From Parasitella parasitica NRRL 2501 (taxonomy: Eukaryota > Fungi > Mucoromycota): a DNA stretch of 64,000 bases. The stretch's first letter is position 1. Every line of letters starts with the position of its first letter. The stretch is taken from positions 18,555-82,554 of the forward strand of contig MU619378.1 in assembly GCA_025201805.1 (NCBI GenBank). The letters are read 5' to 3'. A program made the position numbers and the translations under genes. This document shows positions 55,149-63,051 of this stretch, piece after piece. The notes under the pieces were generated by a model. That model was not told where the DNA came from. It searched no databases and was given only the letters and a program-made list of their open reading frames with translations.

Positions 55149-56736
55149 ATGTCTGCATACAAAGCTTTACTAACTTCAACTCCAAGACTCCGTTTGACCG
55201 CCAATGTTGTGCGCTACCAACAAAAGACAACCGTTCGTCACTATAGTTCACCTTTCAAAGTGTTTATTGATACCATCAAAGAGCAAATGGCCAAGGGTAA
55301 AGACGTAAAAAACTTGCAAGATGAAGCAGGCAGACTTAATGATAGTGAGGCACTTAAGAAGGCAAAGGAGATGTTTGAGAAAGCCAAGGTAATGGCGATA
55401 ACATCGTATGTTTGTATGCATAAACTTATTATTTGAATCTCGCTAGGCTCAACAATCTGCTCAGTCTGAACGCTTAAAGCAAGCAACTGAAAAGTTCACG
55501 AAGGCTGCTGAAAAGATGGGATCTTCTGTCAATGAGTCCTTCAAAAAGGCATCCGAGACCGAATTCGCCAAGGATACTTCAGAGAAAATAAAAAAGGCAG
55601 CAGAAACAATTAATAAAACTGCTGATCCTCTCAAAAAGAGTGAAGCTGTTGGTAAGATCACTGATTCTTTCAAGACAGTCTTGAAGGATAATAGCGGCAG
55701 ATATGGTGGTTTCGTGGACAAAGAAACTAGACGTAAATTGCGCGAGGAAGCACAAAAGACAACAGAAGGTGCTGCGAAGAATGTTGCCGAAAACCCTGAC
55801 GCTGGCGCCAGTATTGTCCTCCATAAAGACTCCAAGTGGAAGGAAAGCTGGAATAAATTCAAGGAAGATAGCCCCATCATGCAAGGTAAGATGTCAGACA
55901 AGGTGTTCCAGAAGAGTTGCACACTCAACGTTGTATGATTAGGCATCTTTCGTGCAAGAAGAAATTATGAAGAATCAGATAATGTATTTGTCTCTTATTC
56001 CCGTGCTTTTACTGATCGTATTTCAGATACCTTTGGTAAGTTGATTGAAAAGAAATTTTGAATAAGATGGTTTTTATTAACACGATTCTTTGGGCGGGAA
56101 ATAGGCTCTATTTTTGAAGAATCAGATCAAGCACAAGCTATTCGTGCCTTCCAATCCATTGATCCCACATTCAACATGGATAGATTTCTCACTGATGCTC
56201 GAAAATACATAGTTCCTGAGCTTATGGAAGCCTATTTGAAGGGTGATGTCGAAACACTGAAATTATGGTGTTCTGAAGCAGTAAGTGAGAAAAAGAAAAA
56301 AGAAGAGAGAGAGAAAAAGTATTCACATGTGTATCTACAGACATACAATGTGCTGACTGCCGTCATCCAAGCACAAATGCAACAAGGGTTGATCAGTGAT
56401 TGCAAGATTCAAGATTTGCGTGATATTGAAGTAAGCTTACTCGTTTTCCGACAAAATGAACAGAGTTAATTTTTTTTTTTTTTCGTGCATTAGTTGGTTG
56501 CTGCCAAAATTTTAGAAAATGATGTTCCTGTGTTGGTTTTGTCATTCCGCACGCAAGAGATTATTGTTTTCCGCAATGCCAAGAGTGGCGAAATTGTTTA
56601 CGGAAAGGAGGATTTGATTGAGCAAGTTACTTATGCCTGTGTACTTACCAAGGAACCGGAGGATCTCAATAACCCTGTTACAGGTGGCTGGAGAATCATT
56701 GATATGGCCAAGCATGACTCAAGACCTGTTTGGTAA
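55149..56736 (+). CDS. TIM44: Mitochondrial import translocase subunit Tim44; multi-exon
   Basis: SPFKVFIDTIKEQ, YGGFVDKETRR, LHKDSKWKESW, DPTFNMDRF...YIVPELMEAYLKGDVETLKLWCSEA, SFRTQEI, GWRIIDM. Confidence 0.95.
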
Positions 56737-57521
56737 TAAGCATCACTTTTTTTTTTATTTAAAAATAGACTTTATATACTCCCCTCCTCTTCCCCTCTCC
56801 TGCCTTCTCTCTTACACTTGTTTTATAATTTCATTTATATACACAGATTTACATATTGTAGAATAAGCATAAAAAATGGATTTTGTACTGTAGATGCTAA
56901 AATATTGACCCAAAACTGGCCACTGTATGCAAAATAATTTCGAATAATGATAAAGCTAAATGTTTAACCATGTGCAACTGTTAGAGCTTAAAAAGGACTT
57001 GACAAGGAAACTTGTATATATGCTTGTACAGGGTCAGGGGCATCTGTCATTGTTGATTCAGTGCCCGCGGACGTGCATATGATAATCTCGAGCAGACTTC
57101 ATCTCTTAACCATGGACGGGCTGTCAGAATTCACAGAAAGCAGATGATTTGGCAGGCGGCATTGTTCAATGTCCATTAAGGTTTATTATTCTGGACTAAA
57201 TGCTAATTATTGCCTTTCTTTCCCTTATAATTGTCATAATTGTTTAATCGGACCCAAGCAATAAGAAATTTTTGGCTGAGTGTTACATGGAATATCTACA
57301 CACAGACTTTAATAAGGACCCCCATAAACAGTGAGAGCACAAGGGAACTAATAAAGATGGTATTCCGATTGGCTCAAATAATCATGCCATTTACAACATG
57401 TAGCAATATAAATGTGATATATTTGCCTGTACAGTTATTCCGTTGCGGAATTGAAGAAGAGTATAAAATCAAGTTACCCCTATATTTTCTCTCTCTTTTC
57501 TTTCATCAACTCCAAGCTAAC

Positions 57522-60319
57522 ATGCAATATAAACACGATGATTTGCAGTCGCAAAACTCTTTCTCGTCTTCGTCGTCTACCTATTCATCGTCAACATCAA
57601 ACTCATCAGCAGCAGACGACCATTCTTCGAGCATTTCGTCGACGCAGTACACGCTAAACCAAGTTTTATCGAATCCAAAATTGCTATGTGCATTTGAATG
57701 CTTTCTTCGCCAAACATGGTCACATGAGAACCTGTTATTTATCGAGGCCATTACCCAATTAAAGCACGAAACCAACGCAAAGACGGTTGAAATCACGCTT
57801 CATAGAATATACAAGACATTCCTAGCCAAGGGCTCACCGCTAGAATTGAATGTCACCACTCAAGATCAAGTGAGAGAAGACATCCGGTCTTTGGAATGGG
57901 CCATCGTAGACAGAGTCGACGCTGTTACTATTTTAGAAGAAACGGAAGCACAAGTTGTTGACATGCTGGTATTACACACACGTTGCATCCTAATTTAGGC
58001 GCATGCTAAACTAATGAAATACTGAACTTTTATAGAAATCAAAGCTAGCCGAGTTTATTGACACAATGGATCTTCCAACTGGGTAAGGCACACAGTTACA
58101 CCAGACAACCTCATGCTCGTACTCATTTTATCATTGTATCATGTGTAAACAGGAATGTGAGTCCATCAAATATCACACATCAGCAAGTCAGCGTAGTCAT
58201 TATCGGTGGTGGATTCACTGTACGGTATATCAAAAGGCCATTCTATATTACTTATGCTTACGTTATATTACTACAAACAGGGCTTCACTGTTGCTTCCGT
58301 TCTAGACCAGATGCCCCGCTTCTATGTGACATTAATTGATACAAAAGGTACTCTACTACTGTATATGTATGAAACTTTGGATATTAAATCATTTTCCCTA
58401 GATTCATTTGAATATACCCCTGGTATTGTCAAGAAGATCATCAACCCTGAACAGACTAGTTCTCTTCGAGTTCGCCACGACGCCTATGTAAAGAACGGCA
58501 GGGTCATCATTGGCTATGCTGAGGATCTTGCCAATGGCGGTAAATCTGTCACAGTCAATCGCGAAAAGGTATATATTCAGTAGCTGGTATTTACACATTC
58601 TAATAGCATTGTGCAGATTACTTTTGATTATCTCGTAGTAGCCACGGGCAGCGCCTATTCCTCTCAACTTAAATCAACCGACACTTCTTCCTTGTATCGT
58701 ATGTCTGGCTTAGAAGAATCGTATCTAGAACTCTTGAAGGCTCGCAAGGTGTTAATCATTGGTGGTGGCCTTGTTGGTTGTGAACTCGCTTCCGAGATAT
58801 CCCAACATACATTCCCCGGTGCCTATACAAAGAAGGATGTTACTCTTGTAGATTCGCATTCAAATGTTGTCAATCGCAGCGATCCTCGTCAGCAATCTAT
58901 TGCCAACAAGTATCTTCGAGAACTTGGCGTTAAGGTCATCTGCAACGAAAGAATCCTTGATTTTGACTCCTCAAATGACAATGTCTATCTTGGTTCTAGT
59001 GGCCGAGTCTACGCTGGTTTCGATAAAATCTTTATCGCAACTGGCACTCGCCCCAATAGCAACTTGTTTGCTACAAACATGTGCGATAGCTCTTTAGACA
59101 ACTGTCTTGATGCATGGGGCCGTATCAAAGTTAGAGCTACTCTACAGATTGATCACTACAAATACGACCATATCTTTGCGGGAGGAGACGTTACGAATGT
59201 AGTCGAAGAAAAAACCGGTTACGCTGCCACTATTTCTGGTGTCTGCATTGCTCGAAACATCTGTAGACTAGTCAAGGGAAAAGCGCCTCTCAAACAGGGC
59301 ACGAAAGGTACTTTACCCGCTCCGCATAAGCCATTGCATGGCATGCTGGAACATGGTGGTATTGGAAAACGTAATGGATATCAAAAACACTGTAAACAAC
59401 CTTGTTTCCTAACACATTGTTCATGATAGAAAATCTCAATTCGATCAAGAAAAGGTTTTCGTTCCTTAATCCCTCTTGGGCAGCGCTGAAATACTTTGAC
59501 GAACAGCAGTTCCTAAAGATTGTGCAAGGCCAGGGATCTATCAATTCTTCTCAGGTTCTAGGTCGACTTCCAAGAAAACTAAATTTGCCTCTTCCAGCAA
59601 ACCCACCACAGCTGCAGCATTCCAGATCAAATTCCCAGAATAACCGCCCAGTGGCATCTGCTAGAATGCAAAGACAGCCTAGTGCACCTTCTACTACCAA
59701 CTACAACAATATTCCTAGTGTTCGGCCCAGAAGTTCCAGTCAATCTCAGCATCAACTATACTCTAGTTCCAGAATAGATGCGCTTAAACAGCAACAACCC
59801 AGGTCATCTTCGAGTAACACCAATTCAAAGAGTCGGTATGCCACTCCTCCCGAGAGACGCAATACACATTCTCCTCAGTCTAGTATCAGTAAAAGTGCAA
59901 ACACCAGCATCAGCACCAGCACCAGCACTAGTACTAGTATTAGTGCTTCATCATCCGAAAAGAATTTGAAATCTCTGGAAGGCCTCTTATTCGAGCATTT
60001 TACCTATGGTGGAGAAGATATCCACTTGTTTGCGAATGAAAACCAGCCCGCTACAGCTGCCAGTAGTCCTCATCCTACGGCTAGGACCACATCGTCTCCT
60101 ACCGTAGCCACTGTAACAAAAGCAACAACAACAGCAACCACCGAGAGAAGAGATACTCCAAGGCTCATGACATACGACAAGAATTTCCAATTGTCGCCCC
60201 CTCCTAAAAGAAGAGCAAGTCTAACTACATCATTTAATTCGCTTTCATGCTATGATTCCAAGCACTCTGTAAAATTAACAAGATCTACTTCCTTTTCCTC
60301 AATCATTCAAAACATTTAA
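57522..60319 (+). CDS. RGS domain fused to AMID/FSP1(AIFM2)-like FAD/NAD(P)H oxidoreductase, with S/Q-rich disordered tail; ~7 exons
   Basis: RGS: TLNQVLSN...FECFLRQTWSHENLLFIEAI...IYKTFLAKGSPLELNV. Oxidoreductase: VVIIGGGFT|G, FEYTPG, FDYLVVATGS, VLIIGGGLVGCELASEI, IFAGGD. Exons splice in frame. Confidence 0.85.
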
Positions 60320-63051
60320 ACTGTATAGCACAAATATGGACTTTGTATCACTCCTCCTTTCTTGCACTCCGCATTGCAACAAGCTCCAATTTCCTCACCT
60401 TATTATACTTTTTTTTATATTAATACCAATATGTATACTCATTTGATAAAGATTACTACTATTTACTATTATTATGGCTCTCACTGAGAATTGAAATGAT
60501 TGCCCATATGGTATTTTCCAGAATTGGATGCTATCATAATGGAAATTGAGGTATACTCATCCAATACAAGGATCTGAGATGAATTGCGCCTTTTTGCGAG
60601 GTTGACATTGTTGTACAACAGTAACCATGACTTTGGGATCTGTGACCCGATCAGTTTAGCAAAGAAAAAAAAAAAACTTTACGAAAACCTTGCGAAAAAG
60701 TGGTACGATCATTTCAGCGTGTATGCCAGAGAAAAAATTTAGTATTTCAATTTGTATCTCAATTAGCAATGTTAAGAAGGGGTATTTTCAGTTATATATT
60801 TTTATGAATCTACCATTATATGTCATTATATGACATATCTGTGCCAAATATATGAACAAATTTTTATTTTTCTGGGATGGGGGAGGGAGAAGGGCGAATA
60901 TAACAAACCCAAAACGATTTGAAGGGAATCTTATGGAAGGTTTTTGTGCATTCCTACAAATTGAGTAATATTTTAATCCGTCGTACCTAAACACTTCGTT
61001 ATATAATGAGGTACAACAAGTGCGCAATACAACTCAGACCAAGCAATATGTGCTGAAATATATTAACTGTCTTCTACTGAAATAACATGAAAATTAGGGA
61101 TGATAAATGTCGACAAGGCTTTGATTGCTTGAATGCGATGTATTTTGGAAGCAACAATTTAGTTGTGCATAATGGAATCTCCTAATTTCCATTAATGCAA
61201 AATTTGTAATTGAGTCTATCCAGTCTTTGAGGCAAGGTTTTATTAATTTTGGTATGGCGAATTAGACCATGTATGCGCAGAGCTCAAAATTTATTTGCGA
61301 GAGGCAAATTTGCTTTTTTATGGGATAATGAACCTCAATATCAAAGGTAAAACTTGTGGACTATAATCAACCAATCTTGAAGTTGGTTAATTGTCCACAC
61401 AAAAAAACTGTAAATATGCACACCCACTCGAATGCTACTAAAGTGCCTCTCCATTTTCAAATGGGGAAGAAAGGGGGGAGGGGAAGAATAAAAGCTAGGT
61501 GTGTGGAAATTACTCAATCTTATAGTGTCTTCATTACAATATATTAGTACATAATAACTTGAAAAATGTATAATAATCAATGACTGCATTACCCTTCTAT
61601 GCTACTGTTTTACAGAAAATAGTTTATATTACATTATTAACACCTCGACAAAAATCAGTTTATGCACATCAAGAACTTGCTTTTTTCTCTTATATTTATA
61701 GTGATGGAAGGCGCGCTATCAGCAGGTTGGCAGAAACAGTGCTATCTTGCTCCTTTATTAACATATAAAAGAGTAGAGTATAATGAAAAAACGACAAATC
61801 TCTTAATTGAATTTTGTTGATTAAAACTATAAAACTCTTTGGTCAACTAGAAATTTTATTGATATCTATATTGTTGTATTATGCCCTCTTTTCTTTTAAA
61901 CGAAAGCAAGCAAAATAACTTGATAAGTGTATAAATAATAGAGTGTGTTTCTTCCAAAAAATGATAAAATTGGATTATATTTATTGACAATGATCCCCAA
62001 AAGCCTTTGATTGAGCACGCAGCTGAATTTAAAAAACAAGCGCATTTTTTGTTCAGTTTGACAAAAAAAAAAAAAAACGTTTTCTAAGCTTTTTGATTGC
62101 ATATTTGATGCCAAATTTATATAGTCTCCAATCATAATAAAACAACCTGATACAAGGGCTGGTACTCTATTTAAATGTGTAAAAATTAAATTAAATTGTA
62201 TTGAAAAATTAATGGATTAAACAGAAAAACGAAATTTTGTTTTTTAGGCTAAAATGTCCAATTTTTTATACTTTAATCTATGAACAAAGATTGTGGATGA
62301 CATACTCCTAAAGCTAATAGAAAACATGCAGTATTCTTTAGGTTTTTAGCAATGTCTTTGCACTTTGGCTGAATATTTCTCCAGTTCATTGATCGAGTGG
62401 AGTAAAAACAACAAAATCTATCTATAACAACATGAAGACTTTTTTAGGTCGGGTATACTATTATATACCGAATGCTTTCAGTCTCTATTGACACAGATCG
62501 AGTTGTTCCTAAATTTGAGTTTGGCAAAGCAACCGTTGAGATTATATATGATGTCTTCCAAGAGGACATTTTTTCCCGTATAATTTGGAATGTTGTGATC
62601 TTTTTGAATATTGAAGATCATCTCCATTTTCCCAATATAAAGCGCACAGCGAAATGTTGTGCGAATGTGTTATTTTGACGTGATAAAGACTTCTGAGTAA
62701 AACTCCAAATACAAATCTGGAGACTTTTACAGATGTGATACATTATATGATATCTCTACTATTACTAAAACAAAATCTTGATCAATCATTACCCATATGA
62801 CTTGCTCTAAAATCAGCAAAATCTCATTTTGGCGGTATCTCGACAGCTAAGATAGATATTAGAATTCGGAAAGCGTGGTGAGATAAAGTTGTTATTTCAA
62901 AAGTCTGAGAAAATAAATCTGCCAAAGAATTACACTTTTTTCATAATACATCTCTCGATGTATTATATATACATTCATTACACTAGGGCCCTACTGTCTA
63001 ACTGCATAATGTAAATCATGACTACTCATGATTTACTGTAAGACCCTGGGA

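Follow-up and report, generated by a model that had tools for sequence, protein, structure and literature searches.

An RGS domain fused to an FSP1/AIFM2-type flavoprotein in Parasitella parasitica: a single spliced gene that recurs across the Mucorales and may link G-alpha signaling to quinone redox chemistry

FSP1/AIFM2 (also called AMID) is the animal NAD(P)H:coenzyme Q oxidoreductase. Enzymes of this type protect membranes by the reduction of coenzyme Q and depend on a lipid anchor; they are the subject of strong current interest. RGS domains are known to occur beside kinases, RhoGEFs, sorting-nexin modules, and seven-transmembrane receptors. In the effector GTPase-activating proteins (effector-GAPs), of which the RGS-RhoGEFs are examples, a G-alpha subunit recruits or activates an enzyme and is switched off by that same enzyme. 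Here we describe a gene of Parasitella parasitica NRRL 2501 that joins an RGS box to an FSP1-like flavoenzyme. It lies on the + strand at positions 57522–60319 of a 64,000-nucleotide stretch of DNA, hereafter the window (assembly GCA_025201805.1, contig MU619378.1, positions 18,555–82,554 of the forward strand), and all coordinates given below without a contig name are those of the window. A first-pass annotation, made from the DNA letters alone, had read this region as an RGS domain fused in frame to an AMID/FSP1-type oxidoreductase, had assumed a Mucorales source, and had stated that no characterized RGS-oxidoreductase fusion was known. The spliced translation turned out to be identical at every residue to an 812-residue NCBI entry (P0101, hypothetical protein BD408DRAFT_424716 of Parasitella parasitica), which settles the source. 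No paper describing or discussing an RGS-oxidoreductase fusion was found in the full-text literature, a body of text that leaves most subscription journals outside its scope, and within that scope the statement on characterized fusions holds.

The fusion is one gene with one spliced mRNA in P. parasitica. A single transcript contig of 2629 nt, obtained by aligning run X1 to positions 57300–60500, is 100% identical to the window and covers 57456–60427, extending from the RGS box through the flavoenzyme and the tail. Exactly six introns are absent from this contig, each of them of the GT..AG type, and the contig is preceded by an Illumina adapter remnant. The transcript basis is this one public run of assembled contigs, for which the RNA label is presumed. 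Molecules without introns, in which two small linker exons connect the RGS exon to the flavoprotein exons, do exist. The joined and translated coding sequence has seven exons and six GT-AG introns and encodes 812 residues; once all six introns are removed, the frame is free of stops from the ATG at 57522 to the TAA at 60317–60319. The first ATG of the transcript contig is the one at 57522, the 5′ untranslated region present in the contig (57456–57521) having none, and the 3′ untranslated region extends to the contig end (60320–60427). The four introns named in the first-pass annotation (57969–58035, 58083–58152, 58220–58280, and 58348–58401) all proved to have GT-AG ends at exactly those coordinates and are missing from the transcript contig, which spans both the 57968–58036 and the 58082–58153 junctions. 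The count of four was too low. A model with only these introns does not give an open frame; intron 5 (58569–58616, 48 nt), the retention of which leads to an in-frame stop, and intron 6 (59371–59429, 59 nt) also have to be removed. The central claim of one gene and one mRNA is borne out by the spliced contig, the open frame, the Pfam matches, and the alignment with FSP1.

Exon 1 (57522–57968) contains the start codon, a Ser-rich N-terminus (residues 1–40), and most of the RGS box (residues 45–149; PF00615, E 6e-10). Intron 1 (67 nt) falls within the last RGS helix, and exon 2 (58036–58082) supplies the end of the box, to about residue 160, together with the linker. After intron 2 (70 nt), the FSP1-like domain begins in exon 3 (58153–58219) at residue 176 (base 58184), and the flavin adenine dinucleotide (FAD) motif GGGFT follows at 58205–58219. 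Intron 3 (61 nt) interrupts this motif, so that the last glycine of GGGFTG is encoded by exon 4 (58281–58347). Intron 4 (54 nt) separates exon 4 from exon 5 (58402–58568); both exons are present in the translation and in the transcript contig. Exon 6 (58617–59370) encodes most of the flavoenzyme, including the NAD(P)H motif GGGLVG (58761–58778) and the GD motif; it matches Pyr_redox_2 with E 7e-25, and its best PDB match is AIFM2/FSP1 with E 1e-14. Exon 7 (59430–60319) encodes the FSP1-like C-terminal segment to residue 536 (59488), a conserved stretch that reaches GRLPRKL (about 59590), the disordered tail, and the stop codon. All the motifs listed in the first-pass annotation (SHENLLF, IYKTFL..SPLELNV, GGGFTG split after its threonine, ATG, GGGLVGCELASE, and GD) were recovered in the spliced translation.

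The 812-residue product is cytosolic and consists of the Ser-rich N-terminus, an RGS box (residues 45–160), a linker of 17 residues, an FSP1/AIFM2-type two-Rossmann flavoprotein (residues 176–536, extended to about residue 570), and a disordered tail of about 240 residues. Domain searches were run with single exons or with the identical public protein P0101 as a whole-protein reference. On the latter, Pfam places RGS at residues 45–152 and Pyr_redox_2 at residues 178–461, the second with E 3e-33, and the two profile checks proposed in the first-pass annotation thus both came out positive. Exon 5 and the tail have no Pfam match in the exon-by-exon search. An AlphaFold2 model built on a 70-sequence alignment has a predicted local distance difference test (pLDDT) of about 90 over both domains and a predicted template modeling score (pTM) of 0.69, with 285 residues disordered. 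The last RGS helix of this model (residues 131–159) continues across the exon 1–exon 2 junction, and the first Rossmann strand starts some 17 residues further on, in exon 3 (residue 177). Since the RGS helix spans intron 1, the Rossmann strand begins at residue 177, and the FAD motif spans intron 3, neither a stop nor a start nor a promoter would fit between the domains.

The RGS box exceeds the curated threshold of PF00615 on the whole protein, with 38.4 bits against a cut-off of 23.9, over profile positions 2–103 of 117. Exon 1 also matches the solved structures of RGS9, RGS10, GAIP, and RGS17 with E of about 2e-6. The predicted structure is an all-helical bundle with helices at residues 45–50, 52–64, 68–82, 86–101, 114–123, and 131–159 and pLDDT of about 86–97. 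Canonical RGS domains align to the family profile over the full box; the present domain shows a one-residue deletion in helix 8. The G-alpha contacts of RGS4 in the RGS4-Gi-alpha1 structure, S85, E87, N88, N128, L159, D163, and R167, serve as a reference here. With RGS4 numbered in this way, the equivalents of S85, E87, N88, and N128 are S67, E69, N70, and N110, and M148 is present as well. Most of these positions are kept among the 70 aligned members of the family: residue 67 is S or A in 61, E69 is found in 60, N70 in 55, and N110 in 52. The domain resembles canonical RGS proteins of the R4, RZ, and R7 groups (RGS4, RGS9, RGS10, GAIP) and the fungal Sst2, FlbA, and Rgs1 in its S-x-E-N signature, in the Asn equivalent to N128 of RGS4, and in its modeled docking to switches I–III of G-alpha. 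It differs from them in having a flavoenzyme as its partner instead of DEP, PX/PXA, GGL, PDZ, or transmembrane segments, and in a helix 8 with a deletion and a charge reversal.

The flavoenzyme aligns end to end with human FSP1 (residues 176–536 against FSP1 11–368, E 5e-19), the C-terminal domain included, and K523, F528, and W533 stand opposite FSP1 K355, F360, and W365 in this alignment. A Foldseek search returned FSP1 structures as the top six matches, with target-normalized template modeling scores of 0.75–0.78, followed by type II NADH dehydrogenases, NADH oxidases, and sulfide:quinone reductases. The type II NADH dehydrogenases (Ndi1/NDH-2) and the fungal Aif1-type enzymes belong to the same fold class, as the second-best structural matches. 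The AlphaFold2 model has pLDDT of about 90 over residues 177–500 and predicts helices at residues 531–548 and 556–560. The motifs GGGFTG (residues 183–188) and GGGLVG (residues 314–319) are invariant in the 70 members, as are many other positions. Cysteine is absent from residues 186–319, which excludes a redox-active CxxxxC disulfide and sets the protein apart from the disulfide reductases. The second Rossmann beta-2 strand has an acidic end (VTLVD here, VTLVE in the consensus), which by the general Rossmann rule may weakly hint at a preference for NADH over NADPH. The enzyme thus shares with FSP1 the two GxGxxG Rossmann motifs, the GD motif, the C-terminal K/F/W residues, and the lack of a redox-active disulfide. 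The two proteins differ in several respects: identity is only about 20–25%, about 175 residues with the RGS box take the place of the myristoylation signal, a disordered tail of about 240 residues follows the enzyme, and quinone reductase activity is putative in the fusion. An MG... signal for N-myristoylation is not present, as the protein starts with MQYKHDD and the enzyme begins only at residue 176, behind the RGS box. Unfused Pyr_redox_2 genes of the Parasitella genome (contigs C26 and C25) are 28–31% identical to the large exon, which indicates that the fused enzyme is a separate lineage.

Three cysteines of the flavoenzyme are invariant or nearly so in the 70 members, namely C320 (58779–58781) and the pair C475 and C481 (59244–59264). 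The latter two are six residues apart, in the helix behind the GD motif. Human FSP1 has no Cys at the positions aligned to the three, and they may constitute a redox-sensitive feature.

A complex was modeled from RGS residues 38–172, a G-alpha subunit, GTP, and Mg in three runs, with controls. The partner (P0216) is a Gi-type G-alpha of the Parasitella genome, a protein of 356 residues with the N-terminus MGCCAS, which matches the exon at locus L001 with 100% identity. The complex model scored 0.81 against 0.42 for the best control, at least 76% of the contacts were common to the runs, and the partner had a pLDDT of 81. In the calibration of this score, 51 of 78 solved complexes attained the mark, as did 2 of 108 mismatched pairs; these figures apply only roughly here since the ligand was included. 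The modeled interface is the canonical one, in which switch I (residues 181–187), switch II (204–215), and switch III (237–238) of G-alpha face RGS residues 65–67, 70, 108–112, and 144–155. S67, E69, N70, and N110 are placed on switches I and II with low expected error. The kept contact residues and this docking agree with the interaction with G-alpha that the first-pass annotation had proposed to check. The genome contains at least 11 G-alpha loci and 16 RGS-profile loci plus the one on contig C52; three of the RGS loci are reductase fusions. An intronless G-alpha on contig C17 was hinted at and not borne out.

The combination of PF00615 and PF07992 is found in about 90 listed proteins according to precomputed Pfam domains. 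Its holders include more than 35 genera of Mucorales, among them Mucor, Rhizopus, Lichtheimia, Cunninghamella, Phycomyces, Apophysomyces, and Absidia. Beyond the Mucorales, the fusion is found in Umbelopsis, Jimgerdemannia (Endogonales), Piptocephalis (Zoopagomycota), and a few metagenome contigs, the last confirmed by Pfam. When the RGS part was searched against 1.8 billion cluster representatives, proteins of 598–740 residues with an N-terminal RGS box were returned, behind which Pfam finds Pyr_redox_2; one of these, used as a query in turn, retrieved P0101. The ESM Atlas cluster of the fusion protein has 59 members, all from Mucoromycota, 98% of them with RGS. A word-based search scored 8000 candidates, missed even members of its own query alignment, and has no bearing on absence from Dikarya, Mortierellomycotina, Glomeromycotina, or chytrids. 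In a quick maximum-likelihood tree of 70 members, the Mucorales sequences fall into three paralogue clades, to which Umbelopsis, Jimgerdemannia, and Piptocephalis do not belong; the deep order is unsure owing to long branches. The spread of the fusion across this tree indicates an origin before the Mucoromycotina radiated. Databases already catalogue the architecture, under automatic names only, and it is functionally uncharacterized. The sources call such proteins ‘RGS domain-containing protein’ (the UniProt name for the orthologue of another strain), ‘Apoptosis-inducing factor B’, ‘alternative NADP(H) dehydrogenase’, or ‘FAD/NAD(P)-binding domain-containing protein’. The available part of a 2025 review of fungal G proteins counts 12 G-alpha subunits in Mucor circinelloides and does not mention an RGS-oxidoreductase protein.

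The Parasitella genome itself has three fusion loci, on contigs C142 (the present gene), C81 (public model P0121, 686 residues), and C52. At all three, the reductase exons are preceded, at a distance of a few hundred bases and in the same orientation, by the RGS exons. The locus C52:172285–174045 (L014, L016, L020) is represented by a public model of 469 residues without RGS (P0090), with RGS-like exons on the same strand about 50 bp before the first exon of that model. P0090 is probably truncated at the N-terminus, and this third paralogue is probably an RGS fusion as well. With three such loci in one genome and recurrence in more than 35 genera of Mucorales, the orthologues keep the fused architecture and are not split into two genes, which was the comparison suggested in the first-pass annotation.

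We propose that lipid-anchored G-alpha in its GTP-bound state docks on the RGS box and in this way controls the placement or the activity of an FSP1-like NAD(P)H:quinone reductase, being itself switched off in the process, a mechanism to which we give about an even chance. In this scheme, the RGS box would bind GTP-loaded G-alpha through the switch regions, and the FAD enzyme, which depends on NAD(P)H, would be delivered to the membrane or oriented on it by G-alpha-GTP. What it reduces would most likely be a quinone such as coenzyme Q. Simultaneously the RGS box would speed up GTP hydrolysis, making the protein both a G-alpha effector and its own off-timer, and the RRAS site in the tail could permit feedback by the cyclic AMP (cAMP)-dependent kinase. 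The proposed logic of a domain for active G-alpha inside an enzyme is that of p115-RhoGEF/LARG and GRK2, with phospholipase C-beta as a functional analogue, and the effector relation is suggested by analogy with them. Unlike these proteins, the fusion carries a redox flavoprotein and not a guanine nucleotide exchange factor, a kinase, or a lipase. A bolder extension, which we regard as possible but doubtful, is that the family forms an unrecognized class of heterotrimeric G-protein effectors, in which active G-alpha directly recruits or switches on an FSP1-type coenzyme-Q reductase at the membrane via a built-in RGS box, which would time the signal as well, and so ties receptor signaling to lipid-peroxidation defense or plasma-membrane redox in Mucorales.

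Several points weigh against the proposed G-alpha mechanism. Because many RGS-G-alpha complexes have already been solved, the score of the complex model expresses likeness to them, possibly through memorized structures, and not binding by the present copy; nor can the model pick the partner among at least 11 G-alpha genes. In the RGS box, the helix-8 position of D163 is deleted, and that of R167 is occupied by E155 (E or D in 61 of the 70 members) with a conserved Lys alongside (K152 in 59 of 70). The E/N/N contact residues are lost in the Umbelopsis members, which implies that G-alpha binding is not universal in the fusion family. On the enzyme side, residues 500–530, part of the equivalent of the FSP1 C-terminal domain, have low model confidence. 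Membrane recruitment is argued by analogy with FSP1, which needs its N-myristoyl anchor to act at membranes. Both the turnover of the reductase and its substrate are putative.

The departures in helix 8 and in Umbelopsis would suit a different explanation, namely, that the RGS-homology fold has lost its activity toward G-alpha, like its counterparts in GRKs, sorting nexins, AKAP10, and axin, and either serves as a docking or dimerization module for another partner or covers the reductase as an autoregulatory lid. The Pfam score of 38 bits is moderate, and the helix-8 residues K152 and E/D155 are non-canonical yet conserved. We nevertheless consider this explanation unlikely. S67, E69, N70, and N110 are canonical here and in most members, the complex model sets its contacts on switches I and II and passes the controls, and the genome has at least 11 G-alpha loci in need of regulators.

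The flavin domain may alternatively act as a redox sensor that reads the NAD(P)H/NAD(P)+ or quinone state and gates the GAP activity by contact with the RGS box, thereby tuning G-alpha/cAMP signaling, with the turnover of substrate being secondary. This was the first of two options in the first-pass annotation, the other being recruitment or regulation of the reductase by G-alpha, and it was suggested there that the fusion may bear on O2- and cAMP-dependent dimorphism. The short linker and a pTM as high as 0.69 despite the disordered residues suggest that the two domains form a single packed unit. Invariance of the FAD and NAD(P)H motifs is something that a sensor would need no less than an enzyme, and the three cysteines C320, C475, and C481 are nearly invariant. 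The protein, however, retains the full catalytic architecture of FSP1, including the C-terminal K/F/W residues, which goes beyond the needs of a nucleotide sensor. Moreover, it is precisely the position of the FSP1 membrane anchor that is taken by the RGS box, from which we infer that recruitment by G-alpha is favored over redox sensing; the sensor seems improbable to us. Finally, that neighboring RGS and AIF-like genes were misjoined in the gene model, as might be hinted at by public models without the RGS part (P0090) and by prokaryote-style callers that split the exons into separate products, is hardly credible, given that the spliced contig links exons 1, 2, and 3 in an open frame, the RGS helix spans intron 1 and the FAD motif intron 3, the order and spacing recur at three loci and in more than 35 genera, and P0090 is probably truncated, with RGS exons about 50 bp upstream.

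If the proposal of G-alpha recruitment is true, the fusion would provide a direct wire from G-protein signaling to membrane redox chemistry. Mucorales have unusually many G-alpha and RGS genes (in the Parasitella genome, at least 11 loci of the former and at least 16 of the latter), and some of these would thereby gain a function. The three paralogues per genome could be dissected in Mucor and Rhizopus, for which genetics are available, and both signaling and iron biology matter for mucormycosis, the virulence of Mucorales being strongly iron-dependent. If the RGS box does not bind G-alpha, the fusion would amount to no more than a domain combination, particular to its lineage, on an AIF-like enzyme.

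The C-terminal tail was described in the first-pass annotation as Ser/Gln-rich and about 270 residues long; it is Ser-rich, and its length is about 240 residues (571–812). AlphaFold2 predicts disorder over approximately residues 584–812, and the tail is poorly conserved family-wide. Some motifs persist among close orthologues: LQHSR, EGLLFEHFTYGGEDI (15 of 21), FQLSPPP-KRRASLTTSF, and the C-terminal LTRS.SFSSI. The motif FEHFTYGGE (residues 704–712; 59990–60016) is found in 15 of the 21 close-orthologue tails. KRRASL (residues 776–781; 60206–60223) fits a basophilic, protein-kinase-A-type RRxS consensus, RRxS being the classical consensus of the cAMP-dependent kinase, and represents a putative phosphorylation site of this type. 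An RR[AST]S-type site near the C-terminus occurs in 18 of the 21 close orthologues and in 5 further clade members.

Metagenome proteins of about 340 residues appeared at first sight to be the nearest unfused relatives of the reductase and to point to a prokaryotic origin. They do not support such an origin, since the best of them (P0192) is a fragment, derived from exons, of a further RGS fusion that is itself eukaryotic. P0192 has 343 residues and is located at L023:210–1608 on a eukaryotic Logan contig, where a called product of 118 residues with a weak RGS hit lies upstream and COPA-like exons flank the region. It represents an RGS-reductase fusion cut up by prokaryote-style gene calling, and such fragments can be mistaken for bacterial relatives. 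A related Pyr_redox_2 enzyme of Blastocladiella britannica (P0188, 979 residues) has an N-terminal extension of about 300 residues and a long C-terminal one, both without a Pfam match, so that another lineage may have decorated a Pyr_redox_2 enzyme differently.

Upstream of the fusion gene, the last exon of the neighboring gene (56494–56736, + strand) codes for the C-terminal portion of a Tim44-like domain (PF04280, E 7e-12). A protein of 268 residues (P0027) combines Tim44 with a stretch that matches the RGS query (76% identity over 37 residues) and a weak piece of Pyr_redox_2 (19.9 bits against a cut-off of 26.1). P0027 looks like a gene-caller chimera from a relative that shares the Tim44/fusion gene order.

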